Part shown: piece by piece, positions 1 to 35,035 of the stretch | How the letters are laid out: every line of letters begins with the position of its first letter | Position numbering within the stretch: the first letter of the stretch is position 1 | Sequence record: NC_034628.1 | DNA: 35,035 bases | Reading direction: 5' to 3' (one strand) | The notes under the pieces: model-generated | Seen by the model: only the letters and a program-made list of their open reading frames with translations | Told to the model about the DNA's origin: nothing | Database searches by the model: none | Translations under genes and position numbers: made by a program

Positions 1-470
1 TGTAGTTTTTTTCATTTTCTGCGAAAATTTCACAACTAACGCAAAAAATTGAAAATTCCAATTTCTTTCGTTTTTTTCGTTTTTTTCGCAAATTTCCCAA
101 TTTATGCACCAAATTGAAAATTCCAATTAATTCTACATCTCCAAATAATAATTGGAGCGGTGCAAAAAATTCAAAATTCCAAAATTCCAATTAATCTGTC
201 ATTTTGCGTAAATTGTGCAAAAAATGAGAAAAATTGGAAATTCCTAATTTCCTAAATTTGAAATAATCTATCATTTTCTGCAAAAAAATAAAAAAATTGG
301 AAATTCCTAAATTCCAATAAATTCTACATTTCCAAATAATTTTCCAACTATGATAAAAAATACTAATTTTCTAAATTCCTAAATTACAATTAATCTGTCA
401 TTTAGTGAAATTTGTAATATAAAATTTGCAAATTCAAACTTTGGGAATTTGTAATAAATGTTAATTTGGA
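1..470. repeat. Terminal region of degenerate tandem repeats (rudivirus ITR-type)
   Basis: GCAAAAAA(N)nAAAATTCC(A/T)AA units start near 41, 106, 162, 217, 280. TTCTACAT(C/T)TCCAAATAAT occurs near 130 and 320; TAATCT(G/A)TCATTT near 191, 263, 390. AAATTCCTAAATT resembles the reverse complement of the conserved rudiviral terminal AATTTAGGAATTTAGGAATTT (recalled). No ORFs. Confidence 0.75.
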
Positions 471-634: not shown

Positions 635-934
635 CAAAATTATTATATTTATTCATTTCGTTATGTGTTAGTAGTTTTTTGCGTTTAGTGTTGGAGAAAT
701 TGGAAGTTTAGAAAGAAAAGTTTATAAGGTAGAAGAAAGCATTTAATAATGTTAGTGGCCATTATCTTTCTTCTTATTATTATTTTTTTATATATATTAT
801 TATTAACATTTAAATTAAAAAATTATATAACTACATAGTTAGTATATTATATAATTAGCTAATTAGTTAATTAGTAGTTATAATTTAATAATTATAGTTT
901 TGTAGTTCAAGTGTAAAATATAGTTTCTTTTTTT

Positions 935-958
935 CTTTCAATTCAATAGAAGATGCTG
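935..958 (-). CRISPR. Solitary CRISPR-repeat-like unit (not an array)
   Basis: Minus strand reads CAGCATCTTCTATTGAATTGAAAG. The last 20 nt match the recalled S. islandicus repeat GCTAATCTACTATAGAATTGAAAG at 18/20, including the ATTGAAAG 5'-tag. No clear second repeat. Confidence 0.4.
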
Positions 959-1054
959 TATACAGTTTGAATTTATCTAAGTTTCTTGTGGTAAAAATTG
1001 TAAGGAGATTTAGCAAATTGGAGAATTAGATAATTATATAGTTATACAATATAA

Positions 1055-1549
1055 TAGTTATATAGTTGTATAGTTAGTAGTTATTAATTAATAATTTAGA
1101 GTCAGGTTTGAAATAGATATTTTTACGCGATTTCACCGTTAGGAAACAATTTATCTCTGCAGTATTGAAATAAATTGGAGAGACAGAACTTACACGTTCT
1201 CTTTGTAGAGAGTTGATGGAGAGAATTAAAAAGATAGAGATGTAAAAAGAGAGAGAAAAATTTAAATATGTGTTTTTGCAAATGATATAATGAGGAGAAA
1301 NNNTAGTTATATAGTTGTATAGTTAGTAGTTATTAATTAATAATTTAGAGTCAGGTTTGAAATAGATATTTTTACGCGATTTCACCGTTAGGAAACAATT
1401 TATCTCTGCAGTATTGAAATAAATTGGAGAGACAGAACTTACACGTTCTCTTTGTAGAGAGTTGATGGAGAGAATTAAAAAGATAGAGATGTAAAAAGAG
1501 AGAGAAAAATTTAAATATGTGTTTTTGCAAATGATATAATGAGGAGAAA
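1055..1549. repeat. 246-bp direct duplication across an NNN gap (probable assembly artefact)
   Basis: 1055-1300 is repeated at 1304-1549, separated by NNN. Confidence 0.85.
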
Positions 1550-2724: not shown

Positions 2725-2955
2725 TTTTTTTATTTTTTATTTTTTCCTAATTTTATTTTTTAGTTTTCTGGTTTCATTTCCCATATTTTCTTCTTTTTCT
2801 TAATTTATTATTTTCAACATGTTAATTCTATTTTTATCTATAATTTTTCGCAAAAATGTAATAATATTTGATAATATAAAATAAAAAAGTAGATAATTCT
2901 CAAGTTTCAAATGTTTTATATTTGTCATATTGTACATTTTTATCTAGATGATAAT

Positions 2956-3192
2956 ATGAGCAAAAGAATTAGACTTGGCAGAAAAGAAAGAGAACTTCTT
3001 GAATTTTTAAAGAATTATCCAGATGGAATATGGAGAGATGAATTGATAAAACATTTTGTTCATAGTACCGATTACTATGATTTTTTTATGGAAAGATTAT
3101 GGAATTTAGAGAAAAAAGGATTAATAGAAATTAAAAAGGTAACAAATCCAGAAACAGGAAGGAAAAGGTTACGTGTTTATCTAAAACAATAA
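2956..3192 (+). CDS. Winged HTH DNA-binding protein (paralog 2), 78 aa
   Basis: Aligns with the 2476-2724 protein along its length. Start set at ATG 2956, downstream of TATATTTGTCATAT (GTC at 2924). Confidence 0.8.
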   Translation: MSKRIRLGRKERELLEFLKNYPDGIWRDELIKHFVHSTDYYDFFMERLWNLEKKGLIEIKKVTNPETGRKRLRVYLKQ

Positions 3193-3420: not shown

Positions 3421-3687
3421 TTACACCTCTTTTATTCTTTTCCAAACCTTTCCAATTGTTACACTTATATCAATTGACATTACAGAAAACCAAATTTCAA
3501 AATTTAATAGTTTATTATCAATTTCTAAATAACCAGCAATTTTATTTTTATTTTTTGTATAAAATATTATTCTCGGTTTTTCGTTAAAAATAAAAGCTTT
3601 ATTTAGTAAATTTAAAATATCTTTTTCATTCATATTTTCAACTTTGTTTTTTATTTTTTCCATTTGTTCTAAAAATTTTTCACTCAT
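3421..3687 (-). CDS. Hypothetical protein, 88 aa
   Basis: TTTTATTTGTCATAT promoter motif at about 3711-3726 on the minus strand. Confidence 0.75.
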   Translation of the reverse strand: MSEKFLEQMEKIKNKVENMNEKDILNLLNKAFIFNEKPRIIFYTKNKNKIAGYLEIDNKLLNFEIWFSVMSIDISVTIGKVWKRIKEV

Positions 3688-12624: not shown

Positions 12625-12831
12625 TCAACTAGTTAATATTTTTAAAATTTTTTTCTTATCAATCTTTTTATCAATTTTTTGAGGTATATAAAATCCTTCA
12701 TGAAAATCATACGGTTCACTGTACCATATTTTTATTTTAGGATAAACTGGTTCACCATACCATAATTTTTTATTCAAATTACATGGCTCAGTATTCCACT
12801 CTTTTTTCTTCTTAATGATCATGTTTATCAT
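12625..12831 (-). CDS. Basic hypothetical protein with three W-x-x-EP repeats
   Basis: WNTEP, WYGEP, WYSEP; starts 4 nt after the stop of the 471-aa gene. Confidence 0.65.
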   Translation of the reverse strand: MINMIIKKKKEWNTEPCNLNKKLWYGEPVYPKIKIWYSEPYDFHEGFYIPQKIDKKIDKKKILKILTS

Positions 12832-15703: not shown

Positions 15704-16033
15704 ATTTCAATTTTTTTCAAGTTAAAGAGATATCAAGTTTGATATAACCCTTTTCATCTAAAATTTTTTTCTTTATAAATGTCTTTACGCCGATATTTTA
15801 CGTAATTTATCGTTAGCAAAAACAAAAATCTCGAGAGATAAGAGTTTAAAAAGATTTCTTGTAAATTTACGACTTTAATTTATATACTCATCATTACAAT
15901 TTTTTATAACGATAAAGAAAAAAAGTAGTAAGTGAAGAATTGAAAGAACTTTTATTCTTGTATTTTTTTACATAAAACAATTTTTACTTTTACAACAACA
16001 TTTATAATTTTATAATATACACATGATAATAAT

Positions 16034-21894: not shown

Positions 21895-23553
21895 ATGTCT
21901 TCAACTTACTGTATTCAATTAACACAAGATCTTTATTTGATTGCTATAACTACAGCAAATCCTGTAAATTTTACTAATTTACAATTCTCATTATCTGTAA
22001 ATTCTTTAGTTATATTTCTATTCTCAAAATATCCATTTAATTTTGGTTATGACCATGCTTTTTGCGTAAATCAAGATGAATTTGGTTTCGCTCAAGTCGG
22101 GACAACCTTCAATATAGATTTAACAAATTATCAAGGATATTATATGTTAATTTTAATTTATCCTGAAGGAATTAATTTAACTAGTGTTGGAAGTTGTGAT
22201 ATTGTTCCAAATTTAACTATGACTTTTCAAAATACAACAATTTCGCCAATTGAAAGTGAAACAATAATTAATAATTTTGATGGACAATTTGAAACAGATT
22301 TTTGTGCATGTTATCAAGGTCAAAGTCATACAATAGGAACTACATGTTCAAATTCAAATTATGTTCCAGCAATTTCATTAAATAATCTAAATAACCAATT
22401 AGTAATTATAACTTGTCAAGCATTTTATCCTACAAGTAATACAACTGTAGAATTTGTAACGCCGACCACATGTCCTTATTTTGGTGCATATTTAACAGCA
22501 GAAATAATATTTATTGGAAATCAACAAGTCATAGATTTTCTAAATAGTAACAATATATCATATTCTACTATTTCTTCTACTACATGTCAAGCATTTTCAA
22601 GTATATCGCCATGCGAATTACCTTGCAGATCAGTTTACCAAATTTCACAATTATTATCTCCGCCGCTTAAATATTCATTGATTACCTCAAAATTGTGGAA
22701 TGAAATAGTTAATGATTTATATTTAGCTTACACCATATTTAAATATATTAATTATTTATCTCAATTTCCATATATACAAAATATATATCATGCAATTTCA
22801 GATTTCTACAATTTCTATGAAAACTTTCAACCTTACGTATTTAAACCACTTATTCATGCTAGAAAAGGACTTCCTTTGACAGCTGATTATTTCAATTCTT
22901 TAATAGATACAATTATAGAATTAGCAAATTTTGCTAATATACAATTACGACAAGGAATTTCTCATGTCCAGCCTGACCAAATCGTAAAATCTTTACAATT
23001 CGATAATATAATATATAATGTAAATCAACTTCTAACTTTTAATTATAATCAATACTTTTTACTTAGTTGTTATGGGAATGAATTTAATAATTTATTGAGT
23101 TCAATAACTACATTCCTAAATGTCTTAATTTCGAATCCTATGATCAATATCACAATTCCAAATAATGTCTATATTAAAAACTTCCTAATTTATAATAATT
23201 TTAACACTATTACTATTTATGGGACAATTGCTAACCTTGTAATGAATTTAAATTCTGGAACTATACAATTACAAGACTTTTCATCTATAAGTTTTCTCGT
23301 TTTACAAAATAATTCAGGAATAATAGAACTTAATAATGAATCCAATATACATAATTTATCAATTAATCAAAATCCCGGAACTATTAATATCAACAATAAT
23401 TCAACTGTAAATACAATACAAATTCAAAATAATAGTGGAATAATTAATATCAATGATAATGCAATAATTGAAAATCTAATTTGTAGTCAAAATATTGGAA
23501 CTGTAAATATTTCATCGGATGCGATAGTTATAAATAATCAGTGCAGTTCATAG
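21895..23553 (+). CDS. Probable virion protein (ORF562/564 type) with C-terminal 20-aa beta-solenoid repeats
   Basis: Five N(S/P/I)G(T/I)(I/V) repeats of 20 aa at 23251-23550; Cys-rich N-terminal half. Confidence 0.75.
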   Translation: MSSTYCIQLTQDLYLIAITTANPVNFTNLQFSLSVNSLVIFLFSKYPFNFGYDHAFCVNQDEFGFAQVGTTFNIDLTNYQGYYMLILIYPEGINLTSVGSCDIVPNLTMTFQNTTISPIESETIINNFDGQFETDFCACYQGQSHTIGTTCSNSNYVPAISLNNLNNQLVIITCQAFYPTSNTTVEFVTPTTCPYFGAYLTAEIIFIGNQQVIDFLNSNNISYSTISSTTCQAFSSISPCELPCRSVYQISQLLSPPLKYSLITSKLWNEIVNDLYLAYTIFKYINYLSQFPYIQNIYHAISDFYNFYENFQPYVFKPLIHARKGLPLTADYFNSLIDTIIELANFANIQLRQGISHVQPDQIVKSLQFDNIIYNVNQLLTFNYNQYFLLSCYGNEFNNLLSSITTFLNVLISNPMINITIPNNVYIKNFLIYNNFNTITIYGTIANLVMNLNSGTIQLQDFSSISFLVLQNNSGIIELNNESNIHNLSINQNPGTININNNSTVNTIQIQNNSGIININDNAIIENLICSQNIGTVNISSDAIVINNQCSS

Positions 23554-34787: not shown

Positions 34788-35035
34788 TTTTCTCCTCATT
34801 ATATCATTTGCAAAAACACATATTTAAATTTTTCTCTCTCTTTTTACATCTCTATCTTTTTAATTCTCTCCATCAACTCTCTACAAAGAGAACGTGTAAG
34901 TTCTGTCTCTCCAATTTATTTCAATACTGCAGAGATAAATTGTTTCCTAACGGTGAAATCGCGTAAAAATATCTATTTCAAACCTGACTCTAAATTATTA
35001 ATTAATAACTACTAACTATACAACTATATAACTAT
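34788..35035. repeat. Right inverted terminal repeat (truncated in this assembly)
   Basis: Reverse complement of 1304-1550 and of 1054-1300; the outer ~1 kb seen at the left end is missing. Confidence 0.9.

Follow-up and report, generated by a model that had tools for sequence, protein, structure and literature searches.

A Solitary Repeat-Like Unit in an Accessory Terminal Repeat Cassette of the Rudivirus SIRV4: Probable Descent From the Host CRISPR Repeat and a Possible Role as Decoy RNA

Introduction

Rudiviruses are the main model of archaeal anti-CRISPR biology, and to our knowledge only protein anti-CRISPRs (Acrs) are known from them. Here we describe a 24-nt sequence on the minus strand at positions 935-958 of a 35,035-nt stretch of DNA (record NC_034628.1; hereafter the window), which resembles a single repeat from the host's CRISPR loci and lies in an inverted terminal repeat (ITR). 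The window is identical over its full length (100% identity) to Sulfolobus islandicus rod-shaped virus 4 (SIRV4; KY744231 / NC_034628), a member of the genus Usarudivirus from Yellowstone. Judging from the sequence, the unit probably derives from the repeat of the host type I-A/III CRISPR systems, of which it would be a solitary and degenerate copy.

Among the nearest known systems are the RNA-based anti-CRISPRs (Racrs) of bacterial viruses, several of which, e.g., RacrIF1, have been validated (Camara-Wilpert et al., 2023, PMC10651486). As in Racrs, the SIRV unit is a solitary repeat mimic carried by a virus whose host has the cognate CRISPR type, and the action proposed for it is competition for Cas6 and the backbone subunits. 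However, validated Racrs are bacterial, keep the stem-loop of the repeat, have a mapped promoter and often stand beside acr genes, whereas the SIRV unit has a weakened hairpin, candidate promoters only, and no recognisable acr neighbours. The Cas6 enzymes of the hosts, moreover, show multiple turnover and are not stably bound (PMC4041471), unlike the Racr case. The Racr paper does note solitary repeat units in viruses of archaea, though without a functional test, and the available part of its supplements contains no Sulfolobus or rudivirus entry.

Stand-alone repeats are already on record in viruses of the Sulfolobales, and the SIRV unit would add one more to those covered by the text of Medvedeva et al. 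(2019, PMC6858448). That text counts six Sulfolobales viruses with repeats and refers to "three other archaeal viruses" with stand-alone repeats, whose names are given in a figure only. As described there, these elements are, like the SIRV unit, single intergenic host-like repeats with neither cas genes nor a recognisable leader. We found no text describing the present element in rudiviruses, with the limit that the names in that figure are not readable from the text. The SIRV unit differs from the stand-alone repeat of the portoglobovirus SPV1, which matches its own array repeat at 22/24 positions, in having only 18-19/24 matches to the host repeat and in being located in the ITR, and therefore in two inverted copies.

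The mini-arrays of the portogloboviruses SPV1 and SPV2 belong to the same host order and repeat family and represent viral use of host CRISPR parts, as the SIRV unit may. These mini-arrays consist of two to three exact repeats (in SPV1, our positive control, their starts are spaced by 63-64 nt), with a host-like BRE/TATA leader and spacers matching related viruses, all of which the SIRV unit lacks. A further relative is ncRNA60 of S. solfataricus, a lone repeat-related sequence outside arrays with an imperfect hairpin, which retains 1/3 of the hairpin pairs, yet is cut by Cas6-3 and loaded by Csm (Sokolowski et al., 2014, PMC4041471). Within the type III complex, ncRNA60 has a handle-like 5' end. 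It is chromosomal, is related to the AB repeat family, and is more degenerate overall, including its handle (AUUGAUAU), whereas the SIRV unit has a perfect handle and is related to the CD/A-type repeat. The cutting and loading of ncRNA60 thus set a precedent for entry into the pathway by units no less degenerate than that of the virus.

Results and Discussion

A Solitary Unit Matching the Host CRISPR Repeat

The unit and the features attached to it are as follows:

935-958, minus strand: repeat-like 24-mer CAGCATCTTCTATTGAATTGAAAG, 18/24 against the Yellowstone host repeat
935-942, minus strand: 8-nt ATTGAAAG, identical to the CRISPR RNA (crRNA) 5' handle; predicted Cas6 cut between 943 and 942
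928-934, plus strand: run of seven T, i.e., on the minus strand seven A that adjoin the handle; in plus-strand sense similar to oligo-T terminators of archaea, a putative function

As the host reference we took the A1/A2 repeat of Yellowstone S. islandicus, GCTAATCTACTATAGAATTGAAAG (Pauly et al., PMC6452263), which is also the repeat of a nine-repeat array in an IMG/VR contig (L186). An earlier note on this DNA had given this repeat correctly, and its reading of the minus strand of 935-958, directly followed by the A-rich AAAAAAAGAAACTATATTTTACACTTGAACTACAAAAC, is confirmed here, as are the 18/20 matches that it counted over the 3' 20 nt and the 8-nt handle. The whole-length match is 18/24. 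Mismatches affect two internal positions and the four bases at the 5' end, and the final 10 nt are exact. In Sulfolobus, Cas6 is documented to leave an 8-nt crRNA handle when it cuts at the foot of a 3-bp hairpin (PMC4041471), and what matches in the viral unit is the portion relevant to this cleavage and to the 5' handle.

Scans of IMG/VR and of JGI metagenomes brought the accessory cassette around the unit (described below) to 10 distinct variants, which form the variant set used throughout. The SIRV10-type 24-mer (CAGAATC...), present in 8/10 variants, matches the host repeat slightly better, at 19/24. In the window, the 935-958 unit is the only 24-mer within three mismatches, and a second repeat was found in 0/10 variants. 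The 24-mer is also the best host-repeat match in every carrier genome, and in each it lies in non-coding DNA. A 43-residue open reading frame (ORF) with a TTG start (885-1016) does span the unit; it is broken by a TGA in SIRV10 and in metagenomic variants. Because the TGA interrupts this ORF in most variants, we take the region to be non-coding and rejected a coding reading of 885-1016. The picture of a non-coding, solitary, repeat-like ITR unit, put forward in the earlier note, is therefore supported by both the broken ORF and the lack of a second repeat.

Resemblance Compared With Chance

Since the SIRV4 genome has an A+T content of 74% and the host repeat is likewise AT-rich, we compared the match with composition-matched simulated genomes, generated by order-1 and order-3 Markov models of the window. 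Anchored on the 3' 20 nt of the repeat, at least 18/20 matches occurred in 0.2% of simulated genomes (P ~0.002), and the local score of the SIRV10-type variant (15) was reached in ~0.7%. The resemblance to the host repeat is modestly beyond chance.

Other figures from the same comparison weigh against a repeat-derived unit. Of the simulated genomes, 18% contained an 18/24 match at some position, and 2.3-2.6% reached 14 or more in ungapped local scoring (+1/-2) without anchoring, a proportion that rose to ~8% when any of three local repeat families was allowed. In real rudivirus genomes, runner-up matches to the host repeat score 12-13 in coding DNA, as AGAATTGAAAG is a natural Glu-Leu-Lys coding word. 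With the sub-window no longer picked post hoc, as in these unanchored figures, the statistical support is modest. The AT-matched null proposed in the earlier note thus has a divided outcome, with the 3'-anchored 18/20 rare and the 18/24 frequent.

The resemblance might accordingly be fortuitous, in which case the conserved ~95-nt island containing the unit would serve the rudiviral ITR in a different way, for example as a promoter/operator built on a TATA-like box and the CTGTATACAG palindrome or as a replication/resolution signal, and would resemble an AT-rich host repeat by accident. The 18% and 2.3-2.6% figures fit this explanation, as do the commonness of GAATTGAAAG-type words in these genomes, a conservation that is not centred on the 24-mer, a palindrome that overlaps its 5' end, and a hairpin position (14) that is not kept. 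By contrast, it leaves to coincidence that the unit is the top match per genome and sits in non-coding DNA, that the 3'-anchored match has a P of ~0.002 and the 19/24 form of 8/10 variants one of ~0.007, that the critical 3' 10 nt are free of mismatches, and that the T at position 9 is common to other solitary units. We consider a chance origin somewhat unlikely. If it were correct, the lesson would be methodological, in that AT-rich Sulfolobus repeats quite often obtain 17-18/24 in AT-rich viral genomes.

Elsewhere in the window, a second exact GAATTGAAAG is located at 15937-15946 on the plus strand, and TTGTATCTATTAAAGAATTGAAAT, at 22889-22912 on the minus strand, comes close to the host repeat with 17/24 matches. 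The counterparts of both are annotated as coding in SIRV11 and V3, and they are internal examples of chance-level similarity.

An Accessory Cassette in Both Inverted Terminal Repeats

In an alignment of SIRV4 with eleven relatives, the unit lies within an indel bounded by a short direct repeat:

872-1074, strand not applicable: 203-bp accessory ITR cassette with the unit, an indel in the alignment
872-881, plus strand: left 10-bp copy of the direct repeat TAGTAGTTAT, cassette boundary
1075-1084, plus strand: right 10-bp copy of TAGTAGTTAT, a perfect match to the left copy

The cassette has a GC content of 21%, compared with 25.6% for the genome. It is carried by SIRV4, SIRV10, SIRV11, and metagenomic rudiviruses, while SIRV5-9, V3, V60, and V65 are without it and keep a single direct-repeat motif, either exact or with one additional T. 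Set against similarity over whole genomes, the distribution is patchy, as SIRV4 and SIRV11 otherwise group with SIRV5-7, and SIRV10 with SIRV8-9. In carriers with both ends assembled, each ITR has the cassette, with the repeat-sense strand reading outward to each terminus. Its inverted right-end copy is found in SIRV11, SIRV10, and the 34.5-kb metagenomic rudivirus Ga0208429_100006, so that the two-copy ITR element suspected in the earlier note holds in these relatives. A patchy accessory cassette in two ITRs is the pattern expected of counter-defence cargo.

In SIRV4 itself, the second copy is hidden by the structure of the record, which is a scaffold deposited as 1-1300, NNN, and 1304-35035, with one duplicated block:

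1054-1300 = 1304-1550, strand not applicable: duplicated 247-nt block, both copies reverse-complementary to 34789-35035; a scaffold artefact

Because this block is duplicated and its reverse complement lies at the right end, 1-1053 is the outer part of the ITR, and the true ITR is ~1.3 kb. The right ITR of the record stops 247 nt in, and a second copy of anything in 1-1053 is consequently invisible in the SIRV4 record. The real SIRV4 genome probably consists of 1-1053, followed by 1304-35035 and an inverted copy of 1-1053.

An Invariant Island Beside Immune Escape

Conservation within the cassette is uneven, with a well-conserved stretch containing the unit:

880-975, minus strand: conserved island (~95 nt), mean pairwise difference 0.00-0.036 per 20-nt window among 10 variants
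956-965, strand not applicable: perfect 10-bp palindrome CTGTATACAG, invariant, overlapping the first 3 nt of the 24-mer

The island spans the unit together with 17 nt upstream and ~55 nt downstream, and its flanks are far more variable. Within the 24-mer, variation among the 10 variants is limited to positions 4 (C/A) and 14 (T/C), and the handle is invariant. Upstream of the palindrome, at a distance of 5 nt, is a TATA-like word (971-979); the two together have a promoter/operator-like layout and may include a regulator binding site.

The variable part of the cassette is targeted by the host. In the Yellowstone spacer list, two Nymph Lake S. islandicus spacers match the cassette in the repeat-sense orientation:

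949-991, minus strand: protospacer equivalent of spacer NL01B.C01.03_A_154, entering the 24-mer by 10 nt
976-1018, minus strand: protospacer equivalent of spacer NL01B.C01.24_A_52, with 7 mismatches in SIRV4, distal to the protospacer adjacent motif (PAM)

At the NL01B.C01.03_A_154 site, SIRV4 and SIRV11 have five mismatches and TTA at the PAM position (992-994), whereas other variants have CCT and two mismatches. At the NL01B.C01.24_A_52 site, the CCA PAM (1019-1021) is kept in SIRV4 and SIRV11. SIRV10 is the reverse of SIRV4 and SIRV11 in which of the two PAMs is intact, and among the metagenomic variants some have both CCN PAMs and some have neither. A hypervariable patch at ~981-1000 coincides with the PAM-proximal seed of the NL01B.C01.03_A_154 protospacer. 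These differences in CCN PAMs and seeds at two host-spacer sites indicate that variation in this half of the cassette reflects immune escape. Next to it, the unchanging island becomes all the more striking. Whatever the function of the unit, the cassette is a compact case of CRISPR-driven diversification beside an invariant block.

This invariance bears on a further explanation, namely that the unit descends from a host repeat, by recombination with a CRISPR locus or decay of a mini-array, and no longer has any CRISPR activity. It would persist through mutual homogenisation of the two ITR copies and owing to the recent origin of the cassette. Such a relic would account for the divergence of the 5' four bases and two internal positions, for the failure to find a partner repeat, a leader, or a target of the flanks, and for a cassette that is dispensable, many relatives being without it. 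It fits poorly with the island being the most conserved stretch locally while neighbouring sequence diversifies under CRISPR pressure, and with a handle that is perfect in 10/10 variants. On balance, we regard an inactive remnant as possible but rather doubtful.

Guide and Self-Marking Functions

The conservation of sequence downstream of the unit also raises the question of whether a single repeat, or a decayed mini-array, might steer host effectors through the downstream 38-40 nt against a competing virus or plasmid, in the manner of SPV1 and SPV2. The orientation would yield a handle followed by downstream sequence, of which 60 nt are conserved, and Sulfolobales viruses do carry mini-arrays. 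In searches of phage, plasmid, IMG/VR, and JGI metagenome collections, however, the flanks match only the cassette itself: both flanks retrieved nothing else from phage records, the whole cassette had no match in plasmid records, and in JGI metagenomes, scanned for exact occurrences of a portion of the downstream flank, nothing but copies of the cassette came up. The SIRVs lacking the cassette are entirely without the sequence, and the 10 variants show a single repeat, no leader, and no spacer turnover. A guide RNA is therefore already largely refuted, and we consider it very improbable.

As the possible remains of a mini-array, the earlier note proposed a second copy of the repeat:

991-1014, minus strand: "degenerate second copy" of the earlier note, 13/24, inside the NL01B.C01.24_A_52 protospacer; unsupported as a repeat

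A 13/24 match at array spacing is expected by chance in ~38-40% of cases, and the site matches at 10-12/24 in other variants. With this copy at chance level, flanks lacking a target, no third repeat, and variation among the 10 variants that ignores spacer boundaries, we rejected a mini-array.

The earlier note also suggested, as an alternative, that a plus-strand transcript containing CUUUCAAU might act as an anti-tag, marking adjacent RNA as self for type III systems. The plus strand at 935-942 does read CTTTCAAT, and self-recognition by type III systems through handle complementarity is established. Such an anti-tag, though, would shield only one adjacent 38-nt site (897-934), against which host type I-A spacers should not be acquired because AAG, not CCN, occupies the PAM position. 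Indeed, no spacer in the Yellowstone spacer list matches 897-934, and the two spacers that hosts do carry against the cassette map to the opposite side of the unit. This function is the least probable of those considered and can almost be dismissed.

A Possible Decoy RNA

The candidate signals for expression of the unit on the minus strand are the following:

971-979, minus strand: TATA-like TAGATAAAT (GATATAAAT in most variants), recognised by sequence and conservation; putative promoter
1033-1040, minus strand: AT-rich box TATATAAT of the earlier note, reading TAGATAAC or TAGATAGT in 7/10 variants

Of several TATA-like words upstream of the unit, the conserved candidates are located at 971-979 and ~1045-1069. 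If 971-979 is a TATA box, transcription would start at ~946-949, inside the repeat-like unit.

By analogy with Racrs, the unit might be transcribed, processed, loaded, and inhibitory, and thus a repeat-derived mimic of crRNA; for this complete chain our confidence is tentative and falls short of even. The outward-reading minus strand would be transcribed from an AT-rich TATA-like element upstream, and a host Cas6 of relaxed specificity would cut 8 nt from the repeat end, unless the start itself lies just upstream of the handle. The resulting RNA would carry the 5' handle AUUGAAAG and a conserved, target-less A/U-rich tail. Produced from two copies per replicating genome, the mimic could then tie up Cas6 and the subunits of Cascade and Cmr/Csm, leaving genuine crRNAs diluted. 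The virus would be unharmed, as AAG stands in place of a PAM in the viral DNA and an antisense transcript would pair with the handle and be read as self.

Several observations count against this chain, in addition to the chance figures given above. The 24-mer is conserved no better than the surrounding ~70 nt, and the island may serve another function, given that the palindrome overlaps the first 3 nt of the 24-mer. The upstream AT-rich box that the earlier note took as a promoter is present at 1033-1040 in SIRV4; it is not conserved in 7/10 variants, and we rejected it as the specific promoter for this reason. Recognition by Sulfolobus Cas6-1 involves a 3-bp stem (U6C7U8 / A14G15A16) that encloses a 5-nt loop, and the cut falls behind A16 (PMC4041471). 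The viral unit keeps two of the three stem pairs, U6-A16 and C7-G15. Position 14 is T or C in the 10 variants, never the host A, and with U or C at this position the U8-A14 pair is lost. The unit RNA has no match to an Rfam family and no stable fold, its predicted folding being no better than that of shuffled sequences (z +1.55). No similarity was found to the host and SPV1 leaders, represented by the leader ends of contigs L024, L036, L149, and L186. As for nearby genes, the six nearest ORFs belong to PHROGs of unknown function and have no Pfam match above the curated cutoff, and the ORFs at 1539-1865, 2476-2724, and 3421-3687 have no meaningful match among the sequences of solved structures (PDB). 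By PHROGs, Pfam, and PDB, no acr signal is thus recognisable in the neighbouring genes, known archaeal Acr sequences not having been compared directly.

With respect to the hairpin, the U at position 9 permits an alternative UUC/GAA stem, shifted by 1 nt.

In the original study of host range, SIRV4, SIRV10, and SIRV11 are all among the five isolates that form plaques on hosts predicted to be immune (PMC5454432). With three carriers among eight viruses, this association between the cassette and plaque formation on immune hosts is not significant (hypergeometric p ~0.18). Natural carriers (SIRV4, SIRV10, and SIRV11) and non-carriers (SIRV5-9) exist as isolates, which makes the system tractable. 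If such a mimic in the ITR were functional, the range of RNA-based anti-CRISPRs would come to include archaea and type I-A/III-B systems. That the cassette represents the first RNA anti-CRISPR of an archaeal virus, a two-copy crRNA mimic in the ITRs entering the type I-A and III-B complexes of S. islandicus, is an idea that we hold to be unlikely.

Solitary Repeats Elsewhere and the A9-to-T Change

Our estimate that the unit derives from a host repeat depends in part on how common viral repeats are, and here we assumed that the six viruses counted in the text of Medvedeva et al. (PMC6858448) amount to a few per cent of those Sulfolobales viruses that have been sequenced, a denominator that is itself estimated. 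A second line of comparison is offered by an SPV1-like genome (L149; IMGVR_UViG_2974636149_000001), the stand-alone repeat of which, GTTAATCTTCTATAGAATTGAAAC, lies on the minus strand at 12762 and matches the array repeat at 22/24. The SIRV cassette unit and the SPV1 stand-alone repeat have in common a change of A9 to T. This change is also present in 6-7 of ~10 solitary copies in Sulfolobales assemblies, among the matches listed, whereas array repeats have A or G at position 9. If the cassette were indeed an RNA anti-CRISPR, this signature would set apart a group of repeat variants adapted to act as decoys rather than guides.

In solitary copies, the T at repeat position 9 creates a palindrome, TTCTATAGAA.

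Single repeats of the form ...GATCT(A/T)(C/A)TATAGAATTGAAAG are present in contigs of metagenome-assembled genomes (MAGs) assigned to Sulfolobales/'Desulfurococcales' (L018, L019, L030, L052, L080, L091, L114, L115, and L121). These are preceded by a conserved module, in which a CCCC..GGGG hairpin is followed by TAAC-N-GAGACCCCAGCA and a linker rich in A, and they are often trailed by GGGAG-rich sequence; no Rfam match and no consistent neighbouring ORF were found for them. Several of them are at contig ends and some may therefore be the leader and first repeat of collapsed arrays, while others are internal.

Terminal Repeats and Flanking Genes

The outermost part of the ITR (window 1-420) contains many scattered words of the AAATTCC(A/T)AA type (e.g., GAAAATTCCAATT and GGAAATTCCTAA), with short conserved blocks between them, and these are typical rudiviral terminal direct repeats.

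Adjoining the ITR, the plus-strand ORFs at 2476-2724 and 2911-3192 are paralogues, both assigned to phrog_9113 (unknown function), with very similar C-terminal halves (...PETGR(S/K)..RVYLKQ).

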